Source: Mantamonas sphyraenae STR306
Taxonomy: Eukaryota > Protista > CRuMs
Direction: 5' to 3'
DNA: 64,000 nucleotides
Assembly: GCA_026936335.1 (NCBI GenBank)
Contig: JAPMXV010000063.1
Location: forward strand, 62,001 to 126,000
Shown: piece by piece, positions 20,277-26,974 of the stretch
Numbering within the stretch: the stretch's first letter is position 1
Layout: the number at the start of each line of letters is the position of its first letter
Program-made: the position numbers and the translations under genes
The notes under the pieces: generated by a model
What the model was told of the DNA's origin: nothing
The model's input: the letters and a program-made list of their open reading frames with translations, nothing else
Database searches by the model: none

Positions 20277-20457
20277 GAGGGAGACGAGGTGGAGGATCAG
20301 GAATCAGGAATGGAAGATGCCGTTGTTGCTGCTGACCACGAGGCAATCCTGCACATTGTTGCCGAGCAAGGCGTCGACACGCGTGTGCGATACCGGCAGA
20401 CTGGGCTTTTGGTGGCTTGCAAGGTGGGCATGGCTGACACGGCGCAGTTGTTGCTTA

Positions 20458-20479
20458 CAGGCTGTTCGGTTCAAATTGA
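20458..20479 (+). repeat. Left terminal inverted repeat CAGGCTGTTCGGTTCAAATTGA
   Basis: 16/22 identity to the reverse complement of 26255-26276; contains palindrome TCAA-N-TTGA. Confidence 0.8.
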
Positions 20480-20600
20480 AACTTTTGTGTGAGCTGGCGC
20501 AACGCGATTGGGCTCGGGAAAACAAAACCTACGTCCTGTGAGGAGTGGTATACACTCAGTGTTGGTTGGTTGGTTGGTTGACGGTTCTGGTGCCCCGTCC
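20458..20600 (-). ncRNA. Putative Fanzor omegaRNA scaffold (may start within the ORF 3' end; guide would come from host flank <=20457)
   Basis: Lies between the Fanzor stop and the element end, where TnpB/Fanzor omegaRNAs are encoded; short stems visible (GAGTG-gtata-CACTC, TCCT-gtg-AGGA, GAGC...CGC-aac-GCG...GCTC). Inferred, not demonstrated. Confidence 0.5.
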
Positions 20601-23600
20601 TCAGCCTGCACTCGAATTCGCCTCCAGGTTCTGTGCCTCGCCGTCCACATTCTCTGGCAGACCAATCTTGCTTCGAAACGTCCTTCCGATCTGACTCCGT
20701 TGCCAAACCTTGGTCATGCACCATATGGTGTGGCCGCGAAGGGCAGCAAACACCTTGTTGGCGATCGCCTGCGCACTCGCGAAATCCCTGTTCCGGTGCA
20801 TCTCACATCGCTCGCAGTACTTGACACGCGCAGTGCGGTCACTTCCGTGCTTGCTCTTGTGCACACTGCCACATGTGGGACATCTCAGCGTCGTATTGCA
20901 CTCGTTCACACGCACAACAATCATGTTGTGCTTGGCCAGCTCCTCCAGTTTCTTCACTCCACCACGGCCGCCCTTGAATCCGTCACCGATGCACAGCAGT
21001 GTGATGCGTCGCAGTTGCCCCTCCTCCATCAGTGTGATGCCTCGCACTTGCCCCTCCTCCAACTCCAACTGCATCTTCTCTGTCGCTCGCACCTGTGCCA
21101 GCCATTGCTCCCTCATCTTTCGGATCCGTCTTTTCTGTTCGCGTCGATCATGCGTCTTGCTGTCGCCCCTCTGGCTGCATCCCTCATTGAACTGAGCGGA
21201 TGACCCTTGTTCAGACTCCAGGATCTTGCCGCTGCACTGACTCTTCACCACCCGTCCAGCCCTGGCTGCGGTGTGCACGTCCACAAACAACCCAGATCGT
21301 TTGCTTCGCAGTTCCTGCATCTTCTCACGCACTGTCGCCGAGAGCAGAGCGTTGTCGCGCTTGATCCCTGTCCTGCGCTCCATGGCACCCAGTGACGGTG
21401 GTGAAAAACGCCAGGCGTCTGCAAAGTGAAGCACATTGTGGTTCTCAACGAGCTCCGTGCGTGGGATGTACAGAGCTGAAGGCGCATTCGAAATGCCTGG
21501 ATCCATGGCAAGGAACTGCAAGCGCGCATTTGCCTTCGAGCTCAATGGGATGAGCCTGGAGAACGAGCTCACAACACCGTGTGGTCGTCTGCTGTGCTCC
21601 ATGGACTCTGGGCACAGCTTCAGGGCAATGATCTTGTCCGCCGATTGTGGAAGCCACTTGCGGAGCAGCTTATGCACAGCCTCGGTCTGTGTTTGAGTCG
21701 CTCCGTCGCCGTCAGCCTCGTGTGGGTCCTCAACCTCCTTCCCACGCTCCCGGTGCTGGTGTGCGGCCACGTACATGGCAACCTGGCACAGAAGGATAGT
21801 CACAGCAGCAACACGTTCGATGAGGCGTCGTTGGTTGCCTTGATCCTCAGTGTGTGCGTCTTTGTCGCAGCACCTTGTCGACGTTCCTTCCAGGGCACCC
21901 TTGCCATGAATCGCAAAGTTGTACCTGGGTTTGCTGTGAGACAGAAACGGTGACGATTGTGCACGCTCAGCAAGTGGCGCATCCTCCAGGAACCCCACAT
22001 TGCCCTTCAGGAAGCGCAGCAGCTGGGCGTCATCGACTGGTTTCGTGTCTGACAAAGACGTAGCGGTTGGATTGCGGAGCAGATTCAAACACGCACGCAG
22101 AGTAGGGAACAGCGAGAGCCGTTCATCGGGAAGGATGAGATGTTCCAGGTAGTACAACCGGCGTTGGCCAGGCCCTGCCGGCACCTGCCAATGGCGAACG
22201 TGCAGAGCGTGTACCGCAGAGAAGAGGCGGATGGACAGATGCCCATCGTTGATGAAGGGTGTCTTTGAAATCCTGGGCGCGTGCATAGGGTCAAGCACGG
22301 CGAAAACGTTGAAGGCCGCGAGCAGGAGCGGGTCTGTGTACGTGCCCATGTCCTCCCCTGGGATGATGTTGTGGTCCTCATTGTGCGTGACAACACGTGC
22401 TGTGCCGTTGGCGCACCTGGATGCACACACTTGCATCGCCTTGATGGCGTCGCGCGAGAACAAGTGGCTGCTCCCGTTCTCCTCCCCGATCTTGACCATG
22501 TGCCACGCAAACGAAGCCCTCAGGGCATGCACATGTTGGCCATTTCCAGCCAGCTTTGCCCCCCTCAGCCAGCTGCCCACGGCACAGTCGCACGGGCCTC
22601 CTGCCACGCAATGGGGGCACGGAGGTGGAAAGTACTCGCCTTCTGAGGAGCACGCACCTGGACTCGATGTGACCGCACCGCACAAAATGGACCACGCAAG
22701 CATTGTGTCCTCCTTGCCTTCCCAGCAAACATCCAGCAACCCGTCACAGAGTGCGGAAAGGGCCCATCGTCCAAACAGCTTTTCCCGTTCGACCGCGAGC
22801 TGGTGATGAAGAGACTGTTTGACCGGGTACAGCTTGCGTGTGGACTGGCATTCTCTGGCCAGCTCGTACGCGCAAACATGAGAGTCGGCGCCGGAGTCGC
22901 TCGGATCGTTGCACATCAGCGCCTTGTACTTGTCCACAGAAAGCCCCACCACTTCGCGCAGCACAGTCGCGACCGCGTGCTCGCATGCCTTGCTTGTTGG
23001 TGTGTCTTGAGCATCAGTGTCCTCTTTGTCATCCACACCTTTGTGCAGGCGTTTGACAACTGCCAGGACATCACGGCGCTCGACGTCGCCGTTACTTGCC
23101 ACCACCAGGTCGACCAAGTTGTCAACGGCCTGGTTGATCAGCATGACCTTCCAGCTGGTCAGCACGAGGGCAGCTCCCCGCTGGCACAGGGCTGTGAAGG
23201 CTCCACTGGGGAGACAACGCAGGTCGATGCCACACCTCGCTTCCTCGGGTGCCAGCTCATCCAGATACTCCGCAACGACTCCACCGCTCGGTTGTCTTCT
23301 CAACACGAGGTCAGCTGTCACAGAGATGTACTTGGGGAACTCGCTGAGCTTCGGGGTTGCCTCGCATGTGATCTCCATCTCAGACGGCGGCTTCAGGTAG
23401 ATTCGGCCTACCTTGAGCTGCAGGCAAGCCGACAGCACGTTCTCGAGGTCTTTGCTTGGTTCCAGCAGACCACACTCGAGCAAATCACACTGGATGGCAA
23501 CGATTAGCCCAAAGGCGTGCGCCATCGCATCCAACTCTTCCACGGATCGTGCGTTGATGAGCGCAGCATTTCGCAGTTTCTCGAGGCTGCCGAGCTCCAC

Positions 23601-25772
23601 CACACACGAAGACGATGCCAGACGCTCAGTATGGTCCGAGTCCAGCTTCGGTGTCGAGAAGCCCATGAATACTTCCCACTCGTCGTCCGAGGGGTCCGGC
23701 AGAATTGTGTTGATCACTGCGTCCAGTCGCGAGGCACGGTGGCCATCGTCATCGTCGTCTTGCTTTTTGTACACGTAGTCGATGGCATTGCTGGCCATTG
23801 TGTCCCAAAAGACCGCCTCGTCAGAGCTGGGTGGCGTTGGACCAAGGATGGCGGCCAGCTGTTGATTGTCGCCCACGAACACGTCCATGGAGGCATCAAC
23901 ACCCGCCTTCTTCATCGCCTTGGTCATCTTCGTGTTGAGCTTGTCGCGCACGGCTTCCTCAAGCACGCCACGCATCTTGCTGAGCCGCTCGCGCTTCCCA
24001 TTGTCGGCATGCTTCTTGCACAGGGCTTCCCACTTCTTGACCGAGATCATGTTGTTGTACATGGAAGCAGGGTTGGTGTACTCGATCTCGTCTGTGCCCC
24101 GCGCCGCTGCCACAAGGCCCTCGACACCCTCTGCCGCCACGTCAACCGTCACCGGGTACGCGTATCTGGATCCGATGTTCTCCAACGGCACATGTGATGC
24201 ATCGTGTCGCTTCATCGCCTCCCAACGCGTCCGAATCTGTTCCTTCAGGCCGTCCAGCGCGCCACGCAGGGTCTGTTCGCCTTCCAGCTGGCGCGCCTGC
24301 TCCACCACCTCTCCTGGTGGGAGCAGACGTGCCTTTCGCAATGTGTCATGGTCTGTCACGGCATAATCATTGGCGTAGGCCGCAAACAGGGATCCAATGT
24401 GTCCGCCAACACCCAGATCGACTTGGCCCAGCACATGAGGACCAGGCAGGCCACTCCAATCCAGCTCAGCTTTCGTTCCACCCGTATCGAACACGGCGTC
24501 CCATGCGTGCAATGACGTGAGGGTGTTGATCGTGCGGTCGTCGAAGCCCATTTGACACAGGTGGAACTTCACGGCAGCAAGATACTTCTGGGCGTGCTCC
24601 TGCACCAGGTCCAGGTGCTTGGAAGCAGGTTGTGTGCCCCGTGTGCCTTGCAGTAGATGTGCCACGGACTTGTCGTCCCTCAGGATCGGTTGGTAGATGT
24701 ACGTCAGCAAGCTCCCGCCGCCCGCCAGCAACTCATTCAGGCTCCCGGCATCCAGCCGCAGCATGTTCCGGCGTGGGGCTCGCACGGCTGCCTCAATGTC
24801 GCTCGACAGCAGCAACGCCGCCACGAGTGAAACCAACCGGCCGACGTGCGGCTCGACGATGGCGAAGCCAAGGCGAGGGTGCAGGAGAACAACTGGGTGC
24901 TCGGCGACGTTGTATCCCCAATCACTATCATGCAGGGTGATCACAAAGGTGACGTGTTGAAGTTGGTTGTACAAACGCACCAGCTCATTCTTGACGTCGT
25001 CAGCCAGACATGCACCGGGGTTCTCATTCACCTTGTCGTTGCCACACTCGTACACATCGTGCTGGGAACACAGGTGTTTTACAGCATGATAGACAGCAAC
25101 CTGCGCCTGTCCAGTCAAACTCAACGTATGCCCCTGTGCTAGTGTCTTCAAGTCGGCCTTCTCCCGTTTCAACTTGCGCAACGTCTTGCTCATGGTCGCC
25201 ACATGCGCCAGCGTGTTCTCCATGCGCCGCAGGTGCGTGCCGAAGCTCACTGACTGGGCCTGCTCATCGAGAAACTCGGGCTTCAGATCGCAGACGAGCA
25301 CGTACCTGACATTCGCATTCCGAAGGTCCACCCGCAGTTCTGTGGCCGCTTTCTCAGCCTCGACACATCGTGTAACCAGTTCACGCACCTTGTCTTCGGG
25401 TACGTCTGACACGCGGGCCGCCTCCTCCACGACCGTGTGGACCACGGAGCTAACGTCAACCAGCACTTTCACGTCGCCTTCCAGCTGAGTCATGCCTTGC
25501 TCAAATTCGATACCGTAGGTTGCCAAGATATCTTGCTGTCGCCTCGCCTTGCCATTGCCTCCTTGTCGCCCGTGGGCCAATTGGACCGACTTGGTCCGAT
25601 TGAGTCGGTTTCCGTTTTTTGCCCTCCTGCGCTTTCCTTGGACGTCTTGCGACCGGGCTGTACTCCTCATCCTCACTGTCCTCCTCATCATCGCTGTACT
25701 CCTCATCCTCGCGGTACTCCTCATAGTCGCCGTAAACCAATTCCGTGTCCATAGCCGCCTGAGCGGCTGCAA
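20601..25772 (-). CDS. Giant Fanzor/TnpB-family nuclease (>=1,723 aa) with N-terminal FEN1/XPG-like PIN domain; true start uncertain
   Basis: RuvC-I FLAMDPG (D1424), CIGDG, VVRVNECNTT (E1624), zinc finger CPTC...CERC, RuvC-III HRNRDFASAQAI (D1663). N-terminal motifs VLVD106, VLVCD162, LADD258-259, ITLHD282SD284, LLLSSD325. Confidence 0.85.
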   Translation of the reverse strand: MQPLRRLWTRNWFTATMRSTARMRSTAMMRRTVRMRSTARSQDVQGKRRRAKNGNRLNRTKSVQLAHGRQGGNGKARRQQDILATYGIEFEQGMTQLEGDVKVLVDVSSVVHTVVEEAARVSDVPEDKVRELVTRCVEAEKAATELRVDLRNANVRYVLVCDLKPEFLDEQAQSVSFGTHLRRMENTLAHVATMSKTLRKLKREKADLKTLAQGHTLSLTGQAQVAVYHAVKHLCSQHDVYECGNDKVNENPGACLADDVKNELVRLYNQLQHVTFVITLHDSDWGYNVAEHPVVLLHPRLGFAIVEPHVGRLVSLVAALLLSSDIEAAVRAPRRNMLRLDAGSLNELLAGGGSLLTYIYQPILRDDKSVAHLLQGTRGTQPASKHLDLVQEHAQKYLAAVKFHLCQMGFDDRTINTLTSLHAWDAVFDTGGTKAELDWSGLPGPHVLGQVDLGVGGHIGSLFAAYANDYAVTDHDTLRKARLLPPGEVVEQARQLEGEQTLRGALDGLKEQIRTRWEAMKRHDASHVPLENIGSRYAYPVTVDVAAEGVEGLVAAARGTDEIEYTNPASMYNNMISVKKWEALCKKHADNGKRERLSKMRGVLEEAVRDKLNTKMTKAMKKAGVDASMDVFVGDNQQLAAILGPTPPSSDEAVFWDTMASNAIDYVYKKQDDDDDGHRASRLDAVINTILPDPSDDEWEVFMGFSTPKLDSDHTERLASSSCVVELGSLEKLRNAALINARSVEELDAMAHAFGLIVAIQCDLLECGLLEPSKDLENVLSACLQLKVGRIYLKPPSEMEITCEATPKLSEFPKYISVTADLVLRRQPSGGVVAEYLDELAPEEARCGIDLRCLPSGAFTALCQRGAALVLTSWKVMLINQAVDNLVDLVVASNGDVERRDVLAVVKRLHKGVDDKEDTDAQDTPTSKACEHAVATVLREVVGLSVDKYKALMCNDPSDSGADSHVCAYELARECQSTRKLYPVKQSLHHQLAVEREKLFGRWALSALCDGLLDVCWEGKEDTMLAWSILCGAVTSSPGACSSEGEYFPPPCPHCVAGGPCDCAVGSWLRGAKLAGNGQHVHALRASFAWHMVKIGEENGSSHLFSRDAIKAMQVCASRCANGTARVVTHNEDHNIIPGEDMGTYTDPLLLAAFNVFAVLDPMHAPRISKTPFINDGHLSIRLFSAVHALHVRHWQVPAGPGQRRLYYLEHLILPDERLSLFPTLRACLNLLRNPTATSLSDTKPVDDAQLLRFLKGNVGFLEDAPLAERAQSSPFLSHSKPRYNFAIHGKGALEGTSTRCCDKDAHTEDQGNQRRLIERVAAVTILLCQVAMYVAAHQHRERGKEVEDPHEADGDGATQTQTEAVHKLLRKWLPQSADKIIALKLCPESMEHSRRPHGVVSSFSRLIPLSSKANARLQFLAMDPGISNAPSALYIPRTELVENHNVLHFADAWRFSPPSLGAMERRTGIKRDNALLSATVREKMQELRSKRSGLFVDVHTAARAGRVVKSQCSGKILESEQGSSAQFNEGCSQRGDSKTHDRREQKRRIRKMREQWLAQVRATEKMQLELEEGQVRGITLMEEGQLRRITLLCIGDGFKGGRGGVKKLEELAKHNMIVVRVNECNTTLRCPTCGSVHKSKHGSDRTARVKYCERCEMHRNRDFASAQAIANKVFAALRGHTIWCMTKVWQRSQIGRTFRSKIGLPENVDGEAQNLEANSSAG

Positions 25773-25858
25773 ACATCCTGACGCTTCCTACACCTCCCTC
25801 CACCTTCAAACTTCGGCGTGGCCCTTGCACGTCCACCACAGTCTCCCCGGGCGCTTAC

Positions 25859-26068
25859 ACCAAGCACACACACATCACAGAATCGTTCTTGCAGTCCCAC
25901 GCCATTGTCACAATGAACAGAAGCACAGACGTGGCGGCGCGAACGCTTCATTCCGGACCGCTCGGAAACCGAAAGGCCGTCCTCACCGTCGTTGTCAAGG
26001 GCGATGTTGCTGTGGCTACGTTTCCGTTTGTCATTATGCTTTGAATGCTTTGCGTGGTGTTCGCTCAT
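25859..26068 (-). CDS. Probable first exon of the transposon gene (70 aa: basic NLS-like stretch, CxxxxC...CxxC)
   Basis: ATG at 26068, MSEHHAKHSKHNDKRKRS...CASVHC...FCDVCVLG, then GTAAGC donor at 25858; TTTGCAG acceptor at 25767 joins in phase 0 to the long ORF. Confidence 0.5.
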
Positions 26069-26254
26069 TGTGCGCGTTTTCTTGCCCCCTGTGGCGCAGC
26101 TTGTTTGGCGTTCGGTCCTCCATCTGCAGGCCATACGGGCCAAATACAACGAGCACAGCCCCATGACACACAAATGCAGGCGCCATGCCAAAGGTGGAAT
26201 GAACAAACTTCAGAAAGGGGATTTTCATTGGCAACGGGGTTTGCGGCGCGAGGC

Positions 26255-26276
26255 TCAACTTGACCCGAATTCACTG
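26255..26276 (-). repeat. Right terminal inverted repeat (reverse complement CAGTGAATTCGGGTCAAGTTGA)
   Basis: 16/22 identity to the left TIR; same CAG terminus and TCAA-N-TTGA palindrome. Confidence 0.8.
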
Positions 26277-26974
26277 TAGTCTCGGCGCAGATGTCGACGC
26301 CACCGACTCTGTGCAACGCACCAGTCTCCACATTGCTGCACAACGTGGTCACATGGACTGCGTGCGCATGTTGTTGCAGTACGGGGCATCCACACACTCT
26401 GTAGATGCCCAAGGGCAGACGCCGCTGCTGAGAGCCGTCGGCTGGCAGCAAGTGGCCGTGGTGCTCGCCCTTCTGCTGTGTGGTGACGCACAGAAGGACG
26501 CATGCAATGCATACGGGGTGAATGCATTGCTGCTGGAGGATGACTTTGTCGATCACGCCCTCCTGGTGGAGCAACAGAGCCTCGAACGGTGGTGGGATCC
26601 CTTCCGGGACCAGCTGCACGGGTTGCCCATCCATTGGAGCCCACAACGGCATTGGATGATGGACAAGGAGATCGACATGCGTGTGGAGATGGCACTGATG
26701 CTGTGTGAGGCCAGTGACGAGTGTGATGAGCGAGTGCAACTTCGGCTCGCCTCGTTTTGCGCCTGGACATGAAGATATCACTGATCATGCATTGTCAAAA
26801 TGACAATCTGGTTTTGTTCACTCATCCCCATGGCATGTGTGCTGTGTCCTCGTCCACGTGAGTGGTGCTGCGACGCTGCGAGGGTGCCACGTCGGCAGGG
26901 AATTCTGAGCTCTGCCTGGCCACGAAACCAAACGCACTGGCGTCCCACACACACACACACACACTCTCTCTCTC

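Follow-up and report, generated by a model that had tools for sequence, protein, structure and literature searches.

The window analysed here, a stretch of 64,000 nucleotides from Mantamonas sphyraenae STR306 (contig JAPMXV010000063.1, positions 62,001 to 126,000), carries ordinary eukaryotic genes, with phosphatidylserine synthase, ankyrin, carboxypeptidase, LRR, and PPR proteins among the neighbours. An ankyrin gene is interrupted by an element of 5,819 bp (20458-26276), which is bounded by a TA duplication and imperfect 22-bp inverted repeats; once the element is removed, the ankyrin gene reads as one frame of 220 aa. An ORF scan of the window finds a stop-free frame of 1,723 codons on the minus strand of the element (20601-25772), and the residue numbers used below follow this ORF. 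Protein and DNA searches of the 25-Mb, 78-contig assembly recovered 14 copies of the gene, 24-100% identical, together with one 3′ fragment; all 14 belong to a single genome and do not represent independent lineages. Sharp common ends (TA, CAG...CTG, TA) in unrelated flanks are found in 13 copies, and five copies in different flanks share 98-99% identity. The features are collected in Table 1.

Table 1. Features of the element and its surroundings (window positions, unless contigs are named).
Feature	Position	Strand	Basis or remark
Host ankyrin-repeat gene, 5′ part, split by the element	20289..20457	+	Single 220-aa frame in empty site
Predicted guide: host sequence just past the right end	20436..20455	-	Analogy with Fanzor/TnpB architecture (PMC10432273, PMC13565253)
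TA target-site duplication, right	20456..20457	.	12/13 copies; AA in one
Right terminal inverted repeat	20458..20479	-	Copy comparison
Candidate omega-RNA scaffold: hairpins 20580-20599 and 20543-20557, variable AACC run, inner inverted-repeat copy from 20538, right inverted repeat	20458..20600	-	Conservation, covariation
RuvC and zinc finger: D1424 (DPG), E1624, C1631/C1634/C1653/C1656, D1663	20604..21572	-	Pfam, conservation, language model, published signature
Region before RuvC with conserved motifs (aa ~1192-1400)	21573..22199	-	Weak model
Putative expanded Fanzor1 REC/WED lobe (aa ~719-1191)	22200..23618	-	Aligns to SpuFz
Mostly helical region, tolerant of insertions (aa ~411-718)	23619..24542	-
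FEN-like PIN 5′ nuclease with helical C-terminal part (aa ~75-410); invariant D106, D162, K164, H180, R183, D258, D282, D284, D325	24543..25550	-	Model and conservation
Frameshift 2: 2-5 bases missing relative to sisters	25588..25590	-	Copy comparison
Second frame: acidic tract, probably disordered	25590..25844	-	ORF 25501-25839 matches sister proteins
Frameshift 1: one extra base in G run	25845..25848	-	Window copy against sisters
True 5′ coding part, first frame: ATG, basic patches KRKR and KRSRR, zinc finger C-x4-C-x10-C-x2-C	25846..26068	-	In frame with the rest in sisters
Left terminal inverted repeat, starts CAG, 22 bp, 16/22 match to the right one	26255..26276	-	15-20/22 in other copies
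TA target-site duplication, left	26277..26278	.	TA before CAG end in 13/13 bounded copies, flanks all different
Host ankyrin-repeat gene, 3′ part	26279..26772	+	Pfam Ank_4 E 1e-16; empty-site frame
Further giant TNB frames	G000 contigs C8, C10, C25, C29, C30, C31, C45, C58, C22, C17, C54, C11

The sequence-only reading of this DNA had described an uninterrupted ORF of 1,723 aa. The frame is indeed free of stops, but its TTG start is not the gene start. By copy comparison, the ATG of the sister copies matches window position 26068, from which the 11 sister proteins measured extend over 1,813-1,883 aa, and the frame is open over 1,816-1,977 codons in 12 of the 14 copies. Relative to its sisters, the window copy has one base more at about 25845-25848 and two to five fewer at about 25590, both changes lying within short repeats. 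As a result, residues 1 to ~63 of the 1,723-aa ORF are off-frame, and the basic patch, the C4 zinc finger and the acidic tract are missed there. The four cysteines of this N-terminal finger are kept in all 11 proteins listed, and the basic patches are likely, judging from their sequence, to serve as a nuclear localisation signal. The extra base at 25845-25848 is missing from all short-read contigs of runs X2 and X3, a comparison limited by the fact that these samples may themselves be without the window insertion; the frameshifts are either a real lesion or an assembly error. The positions given in the earlier reading for D106, D162, D282, D284 and D325, and for D1424, G1596-D1597, E1624, the two CxxC pairs and D1663, are correct in this ORF. 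The LADD motif is also present, its invariant residue being D258 and not D259.

The C-terminal part carries the only Pfam match in the ORF, to Cas12f1-like_TNB (aa 1612-1670, E 8e-7). Fanzors and pro-Fanzors are defined by a DPG motif at RuvC-I and a catalytic glutamate six residues before the zinc finger (10.1101/2023.08.09.552727), and the Fanzor motif has been written as D-X(125-275)-[TS][TS]-XX-C4 finger-X(5-50)-RD (PMC3627910). The window protein fits the latter with spacings of 202 and 5. D1424-P-G is kept in 14/14 copies, the interval of six residues between E1624 and C1631 in 13/13 copies and, in a shifted frame, in a further, highly diverged copy (L055), while R-D1663 and the RuvC triad are invariant across copies. 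G1596 and E1624 represent the conserved Gly and Glu before the finger of the Fanzor1 type. A protein language model grouped aa 1100-1723 with eukaryotic and giant-virus TNB clusters (0.97). The Fanzor-type layout of RuvC and zinc finger, first recognised from the letters, is therefore upheld by Pfam, invariant motifs, language model and published signature alike. The AlphaFold model of RuvC, from a 12-row alignment, has a pLDDT below 50 over most of aa 1390-1700.

About 1,100 central residues had been described as unexplained, of which ~470 can now be placed. GtFz was the best of 48,161 chains for the mid-protein model in an unbiased structure search (Z 5.7). The best matches of the central lobe are SpuFz, PpFz and GtFz, with moderate Z and high rmsd, and Fanzor1 structures alone rise above background. 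Residues 719-1191 align with SpuFz 18-345 (Z 8.6, rmsd 8.7, 265 aligned), the next non-Fanzor match having a Z of 4.1. At that moderate Z and high rmsd, the models point to aa ~720-1190 being a Fanzor1 REC/WED lobe, which would bring the Fanzor moiety to ~1,000 aa. The remainder is still without assignment: ~300 residues (aa ~411-718) have no match in Pfam-type profile and structure searches, and the ~200 before RuvC (aa ~1192-1400) are probably the rest of WED with insertions. A transposase hidden in the central region was considered and rejected, since there is no DDE match and the region folds as REC/WED; CPHC...CDC was likewise rejected as a central zinc finger or metal site, being absent from diverged copies.

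The N-terminus, which had been proposed to be a FEN1/XPG-like PIN nuclease, was modelled and searched by structure. The AlphaFold model of aa 64-480 (pLDDT 74.5, pTM 0.75) has FEN-like 5′ nucleases as all of its best 14 structural matches, spanning model residues 12-350 (window aa 75-413), with Z scores of 10.5 for T4 RNase H, 10.1 for Xrn1, 8.8 for Exo1, 8.4 for T5, 8.1 for GEN1, 7.4 for FEN1 and 7.1 for XPG. The FEN-like PIN fold thus stands, and the closer family placement does not: T4 RNase H/T5 and Xrn1 are nearest, and XPG_N and XPG_I have no Pfam match in any copy, XPG_I finding five host genes and not the element. The domain was not detected by Pfam, PHROGs or PDB sequence searches. 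Foldseek returned no PDB match at E<0.001 for either model, FEN-like entries in the PDB falling below significance, and it did return a giant-virus XRN (E 4e-4). The language model assigned the N-terminal part to Pox_G5/XPG clusters. On the model, the domain is best described as FEN-like and outside FEN1/XPG proper.

The hallmarks of FEN-like PIN domains include a C-terminal helical H2TH/H3TH part (PMC5499597). In the model, the PIN core is accompanied by long helices following strand 1, an arch following strand 2, additional strands, and a helical C-terminal part. D106 is at the end of strand 1 and D162 comes after strand 2; D258 opens a helix, D282 and D284 come after a strand, and D325 after the next helix. 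In T4 RNase H, residues D19, D71, D132, D155, D157 and D200 are tied to the two metals (PMC3012046), and by order and secondary structure in the model D106, D162, D258, D282, D284 and D325 would correspond to them. These six aspartates, with K164, H180 and R183, are unchanged across 14/14 copies, even at 24% identity; nine of 99 aspartates are invariant, and six of the nine lie in this domain. The carboxylates of FEN-like nucleases comprise four invariant Asp, two Asp/Glu/Gln before helix 4, and one H3TH acid (PMC5499597). Six of the seven usual acids are present here, and the first of the E-x-D pair is L, C or T. The earlier description of an acidic series in FEN1 order accordingly holds for the six aspartates but not at the position of T4 E130 and FEN1 E158, where there is no acidic residue. 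The dN/dS ratio of the domain (0.13-0.25, ~0.15) is as low as in RuvC, which indicates that it is under purifying selection, and from its sequence the domain is probably active. The earlier proposal of a fusion is confirmed, in that both nucleases share a single frame in 13 of the 14 copies; an arrangement as two separate genes was rejected on the same count.

The TA duplication and short terminal inverted repeats are features of Tc1/mariner-IS630 elements. The window copy is without a DDE transposase gene. Two longer copies, L052 and L053, have a broken one between the left end and the big ORF (DDE_3 E 3e-12), and no intact autonomous copy with a DDE transposase was found among the copies in the genome. 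Elsewhere the genome holds 17 near full-length DDE_3 matches, one of which reads as DD34E. We lean towards describing the element as a non-autonomous cut-and-paste transposon of Tc1/IS630 type with a fusion of Fanzor1 and FEN-like 5′ nuclease as its sole gene. The identity of the two domains and of the element, taken by itself, is highly probable.

Several copies have peculiarities of their own. The transposase remnant of L053 has an apparent GT-AG intron and ends just past the position of the third catalytic residue. At L036:7322-8381 (G000:C44), a copy is found upstream of an intact DD34E transposase gene of Tc1 type (339 aa, opposite strand), ~45 bases from its ATG, and is probably an insertion into another transposon. 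At the left junction of L051 (G000:C75), the insertion falls at the extreme end of a gene, on what looks like its stop codon; read by eye, the translation of this gene resembles deoxyhypusine synthase. L055 (G000:C52:~257,800-263,600) has 24-26% identity, a long insertion of acidic repeat sequence behind the PIN domain, and no recognisable ends; a frameshift lies just before its RuvC glutamate, and its PIN aspartates are all kept. The 3′-end fragment L056 (330 bp, G000:C43:~152,870-153,190) lies a short way upstream of a 2,200-codon LRR/ankyrin gene and shares its frame. Only two lone inverted-repeat ends (L057 and L058, at C69 and C34) turned up in the genome, and the idea of many short ghost elements was rejected. 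No duplicated and recoded stretch of host flank was seen around the 13 bounded copies. On the + strand of the window (20489-26279), a GTGAG donor within the right end, paired with a TAG acceptor at the left junction, is predicted from sequence to remove the element from the ankyrin mRNA by splicing, leaving 30 in-frame bases; an AG acceptor is created at only six of 13 insertion sites.

The 143 bases after the stop codon are conserved and contain two short hairpins; an internal inverted-repeat copy is able to pair with the end. One hairpin shows a single clear compensatory pair (A-U/G-C) among ten related sequences. Rfam has no match for the 143-base right end, and the element occurred in no RNA run. 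These hairpins are a candidate omega-RNA scaffold, to which the one compensatory pair lends a hint of support. By analogy with known Fanzor and TnpB systems, the flank after the right end is the predicted guide, and the empty site its predicted target. None of the 13 insertion sites has G in front of the TA, the base there being C, A or T, whereas the right end of the element itself reads GTA (p ~0.01); a motif that shields the element from self-cutting would be expected to show this contrast. A 5′-HTA target motif that would spare the filled allele is predicted from these sequences; a preference of the transposase could also explain the missing G.

The window insertion is polymorphic or recent, since a contig skipping the element at this site is present in three of four DNA runs of one study. 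The empty allele reads CTAGGT where CTTAGT is expected, a two-base difference exactly at the TA target (window 20455/26279) that leaves no TA immediately ahead of the guide match. Possible explanations are a cut-resistant allele, a plain polymorphism and an assembly-junction error. Sequence exchange between copies is also seen in the ~700 bases nearest the right end, adjoining the predicted cut. L036 and L037 have 38 of their 75 differences within this interval (p 2e-16). At fourfold sites in the last 150 codons, pairs that are near-identical gene-wide diverge by as much as 12-25%, and the difference falls to 0.12-0.2 in pairs that are saturated elsewhere (0.6-0.8); a tree of the right-end part does not recover the subfamily clades. 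Such mosaic right ends would fit the repair of near-end breaks from paralogous copies. They could also arise from ordinary conversion in the best-conserved stretch, and mis-polished repeats could produce or add to them.

To our knowledge, the ways in which Fanzors help their transposons in eukaryotes have been proposed but not demonstrated. For the element described here, the observed anatomy would fit a DD34E transposase acting in trans to move it into TA sites. A transcript through the right end would then supply the guide RNA in its last ~100-150 bases and ~20 bases of flank. With this guide the Fanzor would find the element-free site beside a TA-containing motif, predicted to be 5′-HTA, and RuvC, to judge by its intact triad and by knowledge of the family, would cut it. 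The tethered 5′ nuclease would trim 5′ ends or flaps at the break, which would favour homologous repair from the filled allele, the sister chromatid or an ectopic copy over end-joining, and such repair would restore or spread the element. Restorative homing of this kind has been reviewed (PMC13565253). The best fold matches of the second nuclease include DNA 5′ exonucleases that act on nicks, recessed ends and flaps, and we regard the case for 5′-end trimming in homologous repair as its role as about evenly balanced. The fuller picture is more tentative and falls a little short of that: a single-chain ‘cut and resect’ RNA-guided enzyme that commits the break to homologous repair, within a self-homing element whose repair tracts appear as mosaic right ends.

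Because the closest folds are T4 RNase H/T5 and Xrn1, an RNA substrate is a live rival, if an unlikely one. The fusion would be the same, but its second nuclease would act on RNA in the manner of Xrn1, trimming the 5′ part of the mRNA down to the guide or clearing R-loop RNA for turnover. Xrn1 effectively ties with T4 RNase H in Z score, and its alignment is the longer, covering 289 residues and including the N-terminal helix. The best viral match to the domain is an XRN, T4 RNase H itself acts on RNA/DNA hybrids, and the predicted guide sits at the end of a 5.8-kb transcript. Against this, the LADD and DSDW motifs presumably resemble the phage and bacterial type more, and the GEGE motif and most of the body of XRN proteins are absent. 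Other Fanzors, moreover, form their guide RNA without such a domain (PMC10432273).

Less probable still is that the 5′ nuclease works for the transposon without involvement of the guide, cleaning excision ends or flaps during donor gap repair, or that it is a passenger from a large DNA virus. Nuclease passengers encoded by genes of their own, GIY-YIG among them, are known from Mariner-Fanzor elements (PMC3627910). Large DNA viruses commonly have FEN-like genes, and ~300 unassigned residues separate the two nuclease parts. The one-frame fusion has nevertheless been kept across copies 24-99% identical while the transposase decays, which suggests that the tether matters. That one or both nuclease sites are dead, or that the halves are made separately, leaving an RNA-guided DNA binder or a relic, is very improbable. 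In its favour are the missing E130 equivalent and the frameshifts in two of 14 copies (the window copy and L055); against it stand the invariance of the six aspartates and of the RuvC triad, a low dN/dS in the two nuclease parts alike, and uninterrupted frames of >1,800 codons in 12 of 14 copies.

With the preferred reading of a Fanzor tethered to a DNA-trimming 5′ nuclease, the element can be set beside known systems. Fanzor1 proteins (SpuFz, GtFz, PpFz; PDB 8gkh, 9cer, 9cf0) share the DPG motif, shifted Glu, C4 finger, RD and REC/WED fold with the element protein, as well as a single gene between inverted repeats with TA duplication, a short 3′ non-coding end, and many intact copies. They are 600-720 aa long, compared with ~1,820 aa here, at ~10% identity, and the element differs in its N-terminal FEN-like nuclease and zinc finger and in having almost no short ghost elements. 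Mariner/Tc1-Fanzor1 elements (PUl-1, PUl-4, ROr-1, PGv-1; PMC3627910) also have a TA duplication, short inverted repeats, and a transposase that is upstream or lost. The Fanzors in those of Bao and Jurka 2013 measure 625-928 aa (PMC3627910), and extra nucleases, such as GIY-YIG in PGv-1, are separate genes, unfused and not FEN-like.

The statement that characterised Fanzors are much shorter holds for the characterised ones, but predicted Fanzor1 proteins of 1,699-1,827 aa already appear in a list of 2013 (PMC3627910), and size was rejected as a novelty on that ground. The entries of similar length are from slime moulds and Mucorales (PPa-4, 1,827 aa; PPa-7, 1,756; MCi-2, 1,375). They are multi-exon, in Sola2/MuDR-type elements, and the 2013 paper describes no N-terminal nuclease for them; they are set apart here by description.

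FEN-like nucleases (T4 RNase H, T5 exonuclease, Xrn1, Exo1, FEN1/XPG) resemble the N-terminal domain in core fold, in helical insertions after strands 1 and 2, in the six aspartates, and in a basic residue in the arch region. They differ in sequence (9-14% identity, no HMM family match, the E130/E158 position not acidic here) and in that the domain of the element is fused to an RNA-guided nuclease in a transposon. Guided cutters have been joined to end-trimming nucleases in the laboratory, in engineered exonuclease fusions of Cas9, Cas12, IscB and Fanzor; in contrast to these constructs, the fusion of the element is natural and under selection. No relatives outside the genome were found among 5.8 billion proteins (full protein and two alignments), among 1.84 billion representatives (query aa 81-1200), or in metagenome and viral contigs; length windows and word seeds restrict these searches, which carry little information on eukaryote genomes. 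In the literature on Fanzors with FEN1, XPG, PIN or exonuclease domains no natural fusion was found, subscription papers lying mostly outside the search. Fanzor1 in TA-targeting elements, long predicted Fanzor1, and separate nuclease passengers are already known; a FEN-like nuclease fused to a Fanzor was not found in the papers searched and is new within that literature.

At 13 loci the sequence gives the ends together with a predicted guide and target motif. Alleles without the element occur, and selection maintains the second nuclease site, which makes homing directly testable. A natural tether of RNA-guided cutter and 5′ nuclease would, if true, mean that evolution reached the repair-steering design of engineers, and would give the Fanzors, a family known mainly for REC expansions, a catalytic accessory domain. 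If the FEN-like domain acts on RNA, it would offer a new route to guide maturation.

We also observed ~12 further open frames of 1,480-1,860 aa that end in a TNB zinc finger and are not found by profiles of the fusion family. Their sequences indicate at least one more giant-Fanzor group, in which a UCH scan did not confirm a USP domain. The fusion may belong to a radiation of giant Fanzors with different N-terminal enzymes in this genome.
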